Positions 46,589 through 63,209 are shown, counted from the first letter of the stretch. The stretch: 64,000 nt of DNA from Schmidtea polychroa (GCA_044892525.1 CM097885.1:134850001-134914000), one strand, 5' to 3'. The notes: a model not told the origin generated them from the letters alone. Numbers and translations are program-made.

Positions 46589-49149
46589 ATGGAAATTTAT
46601 ATAAATACAGTCTATGGTAAAAACAAATTTGAAATATTAAATTCTTGGAAAGTTAAAGATCTTAAAGAAGCAGCTTCAAAAAGTTATGGAATTTCTAAAG
46701 AAGAACAAATCATGGTTTTTAATGATAAAGAGATGAAAGATAATGAATTACTAAGTTCGTTGGGAATTAAATCAGAAAGTTTAATAGAGCTTATCTTTGA
46801 TTTTAAGTAATTTTCAAAGTAATTTTATTTGTTTATAACACATCAATAATTATTAAAATTACTTTCATCTGTACCTACTGGTCAATATTATTATATTTGT
46901 GGAAGCTATTGAGTTATTTTCTCAAACATAAACTTAATATTAATAATAAAGGTTGTTTTTGTTTTTAAAAAATTAGGTTTGATAATATTGCGGTGTTTAA
47001 AGAAAGGTGCTTTTTTTGCAATTTATATATAACAGATTATTTATATCGAATTCTATCTTTCTACCATTTCGATTTACGCATGGCTTCAGTTTAACAAGTA
47101 TAACATATTATAACATTATTTAATAATAAGTGTTAATAGTAAATGGAAATATGTCTATTATTATAAACAAATCTAAAAGTGGGATAAATGAATTTAACTT
47201 TAACCCTTTCCAGCCCAAATTTTTTCAAAACAAAAAAAAATATATCCAGTAAGTAGGTACCAAAACTACTTATTTTATCATAAAAATACAAATTTACAAA
47301 TTTAGTGAGATAAAAATTGTGCCAACTGTTAAAAACATATCTTACTATAGTTCTCACTAGTTACTGCCAACCGTTTTGGTAGTAGAGAGAAAAAAACTGA
47401 GTTTTTAACTAATGATTCCATTTGGAATCACTGGGCTGGAAAGGGTTAAAGGTTACAATAAAAATTAACCGGATAGGTTTTTTAAAATAGAATATTTATG
47501 TTTTTGGATATCATTAATTTTGGAAAAAGCATCCAACTTGTGTAATAACAGCTGAGAATTTATTTTATCTTTATTAAATTGGAAAGTTTTTTCCAAATTT
47601 TAAGTGAGTATTGGTCAATTTTCCGTTTTAACACATTCACGACATTTACGTTTTTGGACATCATGCACTACCCGCAGGAAGATCAGGGCATTTGACACCG
47701 CTATGAGTTAGTGTGCTACTCTCTTCTTGACCTTGGCCTTGGGAAGTGAAATTATTAATTTAAAGTGCAAATTCTTACTAAAGTCAAAGCCCTCTTAGTT
47801 GTAGGATGTTTTTTGACTAGAAGGAAATGGTAATATTGATTTTAAGTGCAAAGTTGTGCCAAAGATAGTTTTTGGTTTATGATTCATTTACGATGTAAAC
47901 ACAGCCATCGTGTATCACAGTTTGTACATAACAGTAAGGATTTATATTAAACTGTGTCAGTACCACCAGTGATGTACAATTTCATGAACGTGTTAATGTA
48001 TCTTTATTCTATTTGTCTCTTTGCAAAAGAGTTTGTTGTTTTAGTGAAATCTTATAATTTATATTTTTTAATGTGACAGCGTATCAGAATACTCTTTTGA
48101 ATTGTCGCATACATTTTTATATCTGAAAATCGACTCTTTGATTGTGTTCATTGCAGAGATGAATAAAATCACATTGAGTCATAATGAGTTGTATAAAGTG
48201 AAATTTTGATAGGATTTTATTACATGTGGTTCGGTACCCTTTAAACCGATGGAATGGTCTAAAACAGCGATCCCATACCATGTGTCGCGAGAACTTTGTA
48301 AGTATATCACGGAAAAATTCTAATATGTTAATAATTAATAAAATGGATATTTCTGGTGGTAGCACAAATTAAATGTTAAACAAGTAAATAATAATATAAG
48401 CCTTTGTTTTAAAATTTTTATTAAATTAGAAAATCTTTGATAATAAGACAATAAAGAATATTATTAGATTATAATAATAATTAGATTTTAAAAATTAGTA
48501 AGTAGTTTTAAGTATGCCACGCAAATTTTCATATTTTCTTAATGTGCCGCAAGTTAAAAAAAGATTGTTAATCAATTGCCCAAGAGCTTTAAATGATGTT
48601 ATCCGTTTAGTTTGTGTCGCAATGGTCTTATCAAATTATGACCCCAGGAAAAATTCATTCTGTTGGCATGTAGAAGAACAAAAGAAGAAAATTCGAAATT
48701 AGTTAGGAGTGTTCAGAAGAATGTCTAGCTAAGCACTCTATACCAGTCAATGATTTTACTATTTCCGCTCTAGGCACCCATGGGTGTCACCATGTTGGAA
48801 GTGTGCAGAGGCGGTGAAGATCAAGGAACAGGTGAGCCCCATCGCTAAGACTACTTTCCTTGCCACTTTGAATTCGGATTCCAGACTTCCGATAGAAGGT
48901 ATTACCATGGTTCCACTACTGATCCTTAAGAGATGATTGACGTTAGTTGCCTATTTGATTTCAAATCCAAACCTCGGGGTATTTCACAAGAAAGGTAATA
49001 ACCAAGAAACTCATTATTAATAGAAAAAAAATCCAAATGATAATTTTTATACCTTCAATTAAATAAATCAAGGCTAACATTTTAATAAGTACCACATTTA
49101 AATCTTACAACTCCCTTTAAACCAACATTTATTGAATGTCCAAAAGGTC

Positions 49150-63209: not shown

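Follow-up and report, generated by a model that had tools for sequence, protein, structure and literature searches.

A candidate intron-split gene for tandem ubiquitin-like domains with a predicted LRGG end in Schmidtea polychroa

Tandem ubiquitin-like modifiers and the Schmidtea locus

Protein tags built from several ubiquitin-like (Ubl) domains, namely ISG15 and FAT10, are considered innovations of vertebrates, linked with interferon and inflammation (PMC9722776, PMC3248901). ISG15 is a vertebrate-only, interferon-tied di-Ubl modifier, with domains that are 29-31% identical to ubiquitin, and is conjugated via a C-terminal ...LRGG (PMC9722776). FAT10 is likewise a vertebrate-only di-Ubl; its domains are approximately 30% identical to ubiquitin, and its C-terminal diglycine leads to E1 activation and to conjugation of the whole chain (PMC3248901). 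The original prediction for the locus described here had presented both proteins as vertebrate di-Ubl modifiers, in agreement with these accounts, and we found no description in the literature of a multi-Ubl modifier from invertebrates or flatworms. Polyubiquitin of the UBB/UBC type also carries head-to-tail ubiquitin-fold units on one chain, and its units are near-identical repeats that are each cut out after Gly-Gly (Arg-Gly-Gly followed by Met). FAT10 is made with a free diglycine, the stop codon following directly, and its tail does not end in LRGG; NEDD8 has Ala at position 72. ISG15 is further marked by induction upon interferon or infection and by its UBA7/UBE2L6/HERC5 cascade.

The window, by which we mean the whole stretch of DNA that was analysed, comprises 64,000 nt of AT-rich animal DNA (GC 0.22-0.42) from Schmidtea polychroa (GCA_044892525.1 CM097885.1:134850001-134914000). 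The Ubl locus occupies positions 46589-63209 of its plus strand and carries one ubiquitin-like domain per exon, in four units referred to here as U1 to U4. Judged from its sequence, the locus most likely specifies a lineage-restricted poly-Ubl protein whose LRGG end would be in place from translation, and we consider it highly probable that this is a real, intron-split Ubl gene with such an end.

In design, the locus stands closest to FAT10, with which it shares tandem Ubls on one chain, a short linker and a diglycine end that would not have to be trimmed; such a common layout does not prove membership. FAT10, however, has two domains against the three or four found here, is limited to vertebrates and has a different tail. 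The likeness to ISG15 lies in tandem Ubls that are about as far from ubiquitin (approximately 27% identity for U4, 29-31% for ISG15) and in the ...LRGG tail, whereas ISG15 has two domains, is made as a precursor that needs trimming, ends in LRLRGG rather than the AKLRGG predicted here, and is vertebrate-only and tied to interferon. U1 scored 30.4 bits against FAT10 when the two FAT10 domains were added up, none of the stretches being significant alone, and 29.8 bits against ISG15, with no single stretch passing; one ubiquitin domain gave 26 bits. The 60 best PDB matches of U2 and of U4 included neither ISG15 nor FAT10, and orthology to either protein was not found, nor were the two-domain layout and LRLRGG end of ISG15. 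Because ubiquitin is the best single-domain match, and ISG15 and FAT10 reach approximately 30 bits only by summing, the locus falls outside both families. The proposed 'ISG15/FAT10-like' character, therefore, holds for architecture but not for family, as mono-ubiquitin with one domain scores about as well as their two.

The locus resembles polyubiquitin in its head-to-tail ubiquitin-fold units on one chain, but differs in that the units share 14-34% identity, each unit is a separate exon, the intron phases differ and the two visible junctions are free of GG; near-identical repeats with the Arg-Gly-Gly-Met signature are absent, and the U3-U4 junction is hidden in an assembly gap. U4 alone has the full fold and an equal-length tail ending in LRGG, as do ubiquitin and NEDD8, but it has no start codon of its own. 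It aligns with ubiquitin residues 3-72, with 19 of the 70 aligned positions identical (approximately 27%, counted by hand), carries Lys instead of ubiquitin's Arg at position 72, and lacks Ile44, Lys48 and Lys63, all of which are replaced. With Lys72 and without these three residues, U4 would probably not be recognized as ordinary ubiquitin.

Ubiquitin-like exons and their junctions

The four mutually divergent Ubl exons that had been proposed were all recovered on the plus strand, three of them by Pfam and U3 by its predicted fold. U1 (46589-46806), U2 (59359-59585) and U4 (62929-63153) matched PF00240 at 42.4, 46.2 and 49.1 bits, respectively, all above the curated cut-off for the family of 25.4 bits, and the best single-domain PDB match of each was ubiquitin (26, 20 and 23 bits, respectively). 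The divergent U3 (59634-59869, with its 3′ end in the assembly gap) had no match in Pfam and reached 13.8 bits against a designed ubiquitin variant in the PDB, in the correct register. Its AlphaFold2 model, for which the input alignment consisted only of the window's own five Ubls, had a mean pLDDT of 84.9 and the beta-beta-alpha-beta-beta-beta order of a beta-grasp fold, and the best PDB matches of the model in Foldseek were all ubiquitin, with a TM of approximately 0.7.

Pairwise identity between the units was 14-31% in a multiple alignment and 33-34% over the best local stretches. The exons are free of stop codons over approximately 75 codons each, for which local composition gives a chance of approximately 0.0015 per exon. 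That units so divergent have nevertheless stayed open argues for old duplicates whose coding sequence has long been maintained, and against a decayed relic. With a profile made from the five Ubls of the window, no fifth Ubl exon was found in the six frames of the 64 kb; the only other Ubl is that of a retrotransposon on the opposite strand within intron 1, which otherwise had no Ubl in any frame.

Searches for relatives returned little. A HMMER search of 1.84 billion representative proteins with U3 gave no genuine homologue; its one match, a 1086-aa bacterial repeat protein, was judged spurious, since the score was summed over eight weak stretches. A word-indexed protein search with U2 and U4, the length filter of which leaves out full-length multi-Ubl proteins, found no relatives, and metagenome scans with U4 and U1 gave no matches. 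That relatives are missing may mean that the databases lack this lineage, and not that the gene is a true orphan.

The start of the gene is placed at U1, whose ATG aligns with Met1 of ubiquitin in an alignment covering residues 1-70; an in-frame stop lies 51 nt upstream of this ATG, with no acceptor between them. In-frame stops precede the acceptors of U2, U3 and U4 by 14, 19 and 26 nt, respectively, and their first in-frame ATGs are at codons 50, 46 and 31. With stops so close upstream and no early ATG, these three exons cannot stand alone. Flatworm spliced leaders can supply an AUG (PMC5832876, PMC9851317), and U2, U3 and U4 were also considered as spliced-leader-initiated genes at their own acceptors. 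This option was rejected, as the AUG was placed out of frame and a stop fell inside the exon.

The U1-U2 junction (46806/59359) is GT-AG and in phase: the donor AA|GTAATT leaves a 2-nt overhang, which the acceptor TTTAG|C completes to an Asn codon (AA+C), so that the product reads ...FDF-NEFR-V.... The proposed intron 1 that this splice would remove spans 12,552 nt (46807-59358, GT...TTTAG). The U2-U3 junction (59585/59634) removes a 48-nt intron 2 (59586-59633, GTATTC...TTGAAG); it is GT-AG and in frame, and reads ...KLVK-EQRK-L... (spliced as ...KLVK-E-QRKLLVRL...), while left unspliced the intron gives a stop after seven codons. Both linkers are four to six residues long and, as had been predicted for the joins between units 1-2 and 2-3, both read without Gly-Gly, so the locus is not a cleavable polyubiquitin. 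We think it likely that U1, U2 and U3 share one transcript. The wider proposal of GT-AG introns with matching phases throughout the gene was borne out at 46806/59359, 59585/59634 and 63153/63200 but not for the U3-microexon-U4 link, where no usable donor is visible.

Most of intron 1 is taken up by a retrotransposon. At 49242-56894, on the minus strand and thus antisense to the Ubl exons, lies an intact Ty3/gypsy-type element of 7,653 bp, with 777-nt LTRs that are 100% identical and have TG..CA ends, a 5-bp target-site duplication (GTTAC), and a 1121-aa pol ORF containing RT, RNase H and integrase. The identical LTRs imply a very recent insertion. The element is a passenger and not part of the Ubl gene; without it, intron 1 would measure approximately 4.9 kb. 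U4, in turn, is bracketed by two 198-nt stretches (61357-61553 and 63803-64000) that are 99% identical and belong to minus-strand remnants of Tc1/mariner-type transposases, with a weak DDE_3 match at 63700-63852. It is these intervening transposable elements that make the exons seem unconnected when only ORFs are viewed, and none of the exons is broken by them.

The C-terminus and the link across the gap

The best-supported part of the locus is its predicted 46-nt last intron with the LRGG end. U4, the penultimate exon, ends at the donor TTAG|GTATAT, which is followed by an intron with an AT-rich body (63154-63199, GTATAT...ATTTAG) that closes on TTTAG and resembles the 48-nt intron 2 in its near-equal size, its GTAT start and its AT-rich body. 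Splicing to a terminal 10-nt coding segment (63200-63209, A GGG GGA TAA) would give ...AKLRGG-stop. The predicted tail, V-A-K-L-R-G-G, corresponds to ubiquitin positions 70-76 in equal length and exact register (AKLRGG to 71-76), placing the Gly-Gly pair expected of a conjugatable modifier at positions 75-76, and the stop codon directly after it would leave a free diglycine end. The acceptor motif AG|RGG-stop has a single occurrence in the 64 kb, counting both strands, at the 63200 site, and in a composition-matched simulation the chance of finding it 28-150 nt past a donor was 1.85e-4. The proposal that a 10-nt last exon creates an LRGG-stop end only after splicing is thus upheld by an in-frame GT-AG pair at 63153/63200, by the register of ubiquitin 73-76 and by the uniqueness of the motif in the window. 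An AATAAA lies at 63381, 172 nt beyond the stop, and is weak evidence in DNA so rich in AT.

The connection between U3 and this C-terminal part runs through an assembly gap (59870-60009) that conceals how exon 3 ends, together with any donor. The frame of U3 stays open up to the edge of the gap, its last codon being completed at 59869. Beyond the gap, the frame beginning at 60010 opens with TGA, that at 60011 has a TAA at 60014, and that at 60012 is open to 60149 but leaves 1 nt over at the strong donor at 60066, a misfit with the U4 acceptor, which needs 2 nt. If the gap spanned its nominal 140 N, U3 would run into a stop at 60014-60016; that length is an estimate, so that this stop carries little weight. 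A direct splice from 59853, the sole GT in the visible tail of U3, to U4 was rejected since it leaves a 1-nt overhang in the wrong phase, and joining the same GT to the candidate microexon creates a TGA. Taken together, these frames and donors mean that the continuity and frame of U3 and U4 are not establishable from the sequence.

A 28-nt microexon at 60039-60066 had been proposed as the linker. Its donor, CAG|GTAAGT, is the sole GTAAGT in 60010-62928 and is in phase with U4, and this is the one feature in its favour. The acceptor (…ACTATGCAG) is weak, lacking the T-rich stretch seen in the other four acceptors; the GC content is 0.57, compared with approximately 0.32 in the surroundings; coding evidence was not found; and the model requires a donor inside the gap, out of sight. 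The microexon was not confirmed and is best called putative. An alternative acceptor would begin the exon at 60029 in phase 0, and a spliced-leader AUG there would read on into U4 via the donor at 60066. These 2.9 kb also contain, by chance, 33 ATG-started mini-exons with a fitting GT donor. That all four Ubls belong to one gene is accordingly borne out for the joins of U1, U2 and U3 and not for that between U3 and U4, which runs through the gap and the unsupported microexon, and we see the chance that all four units are in one protein as evenly balanced.

A 68-aa ORF on the minus strand (60031-60237) begins right after the gap and overlaps the microexon. It matches a Ty5 Gag N-terminal family weakly and without significance (E 0.014; 15.6 bits, the cut-off being 23.5), and the post-gap DNA may be repeat-derived.

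Competing readings and the surrounding window

Our preferred reading, held tentatively and at slightly less than an even chance, is a single, lineage-restricted locus with one Ubl per exon, the four units of which are joined and conjugated as an LRGG-ended poly-Ubl. U1 supplies the start, U2 and U3 are internal, and U4 is predicted to be spliced to LRGG-stop; the most parsimonious transcript would join all four units via a donor hidden in the gap, giving a poly-Ubl of at least approximately 300 residues. Like FAT10, such a protein would be translated with its C-terminal Gly-Gly already in place and would call for no maturation step. The terminal glycine would be activated by E1, and all four domains would be linked in one piece to target lysines as a genetically encoded chain mimic that is non-trimmable at the two visible junctions, as deubiquitinases could not trim where Gly-Gly is lacking. 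Conjugation of the product as a single block is plausible by design, and an immune or stress role is pure conjecture. No E1 gene is present in the 64-kb window. Several points count against the preferred reading: the U3-U4 link has no visible donor, faces immediate stops in two of the three post-gap frames and depends on an unsupported microexon; with no homologue found, conservation of the four-Ubl architecture is not demonstrable; and U4 lacks Ile44, Lys48 and Lys63.

The same exons might instead be divided between two products, a U1-U2-U3 tri-Ubl without a Gly-Gly end that stops in or just past the gap, and U4 as a separate mono-Ubl modifier with LRGG. The 5′ end of U4 could then be another exon, or a spliced-leader AUG joined at 60029 and carried through the 60066 donor to U4. 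We judge such a division possible, if rather unlikely. The TAA that the nominal gap places in the U3 frame at 60014-60016 and the TGA that opens another frame at 60010 are in keeping with it, but with the length of the gap estimated only, the post-gap frame means little. Similarly, an AUG at the acceptor of the 60029 exon does stay in frame across the donor at 60066 and on into U4, but this fit has a one-in-three chance of being accidental. While 3 kb with transposon remnants lie between U3 and U4, U4 has no start codon of its own, and shares its strand, exon design and tiny-intron style with U2-U3, which favours a single gene.

Decay offers a different account, in which the locus is a silent or recently disabled poly-Ubl relic, broken up by transposon insertions and no longer expressed as protein. 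The 7.65-kb LTR retrotransposon with identical LTRs between U1 and U2, the Tc1/mariner-type remnants flanking U4 and the failure to find either a homologue or an annotation would all suit a relic, which we nonetheless consider improbable: the four exons have neither frameshift nor stop (chance approximately 0.0015 each), the visible splice sites are all intact, and the insertions are intronic, the large one being antisense. Antisense intronic insertions are usually tolerated. The absence of homologues may, as noted above, reflect a lineage missing from the databases, and other ORFs in the window are equally unrecorded. Finally, the Ubl exons might derive from transposable elements, as leftovers of a Ubl module like that in the intron 1 retrotransposon, and not be a host gene at all. 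That element does have a ubiquitin-family domain of its own in its upstream ORF, ending in LSGG (PF00240, 34.3 bits), but this Ubl shares no more than 14-27% identity with the four exons and is encoded on the other strand, the exons are laid out like a gene, with start, stop and GT-AG introns, and the window holds no repeat copies of them, so that an origin of this kind is scarcely credible.

Returning to the preferred reading, its furthest consequence would be that a flatworm-like invertebrate attaches a four-domain, LRGG-ended protein as one piece, a deubiquitinase-proof chain mimic and the first multi-Ubl conjugated modifier outside vertebrates, independent of ISG15 and FAT10. We regard this as doubtful, and the locus as a promising candidate rather than a demonstrated new modifier. 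If true, an invertebrate LRGG tag of three or four domains would mean that pre-assembled Ubl strings arose more than once, and would give a natural setting in which to test the effects of a chain that cannot be trimmed. For annotation, the lesson is that the defining C-terminus exists only once a 46-nt intron has been removed, and that no exon is gene-like alone.

The ubiquitin-family domain of the intron 1 retrotransposon merits description in its own right. The upstream ORF of the element (53553-56327, minus strand; 924 aa) starts inside its own 5′ LTR, and the 34.3-bit match to PF00240 covers residues 519-579 of this ORF (Ubl at approximately 54558-54815); the domain ends ...PLSGG immediately ahead of a gag-like part. 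The gag-like part matches DUF7041 at 23.9 bits, below the cut-off. A word-indexed protein search found no relatives of the Ubl-gag region, and no Ubl-Gag fusion was found described in the literature. From its sequence, the predicted Ubl-GlyGly-Gag fusion could be cleavable by host deubiquitinases.

Elsewhere, the window contains SIX-class homeobox, ankyrin-repeat and RING ORFs, as well as several transposable elements. Neither this repeat content nor the introns of 46-48 nt speak against a flatworm. The small intron of the neighbouring RING gene was dropped as an independent reference for intron size, its junction being without GT. Rfam and tRNA scans gave no matches, and exact database look-ups of the pol, SIX and U1 ORFs returned no record. 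Five other assembly gaps are present (19263-19418, 37131-37328, 40961-41177, 41416-41592 and 42816-42955). The transposable elements include a second retroelement on the plus strand (1600-5700), with its RNase H part at 3860-4372, and a piggyBac-type transposase fragment on the minus strand (17017-17658; DDE_Tnp_1_7 at 143.7 bits). The SIX-class homeobox ORF (20007-20765, minus strand) combines a SIX1_SD match of 115 bits with a homeodomain, and the SIX1_SD match is split into two stretches, which suggests an internal partial duplication.
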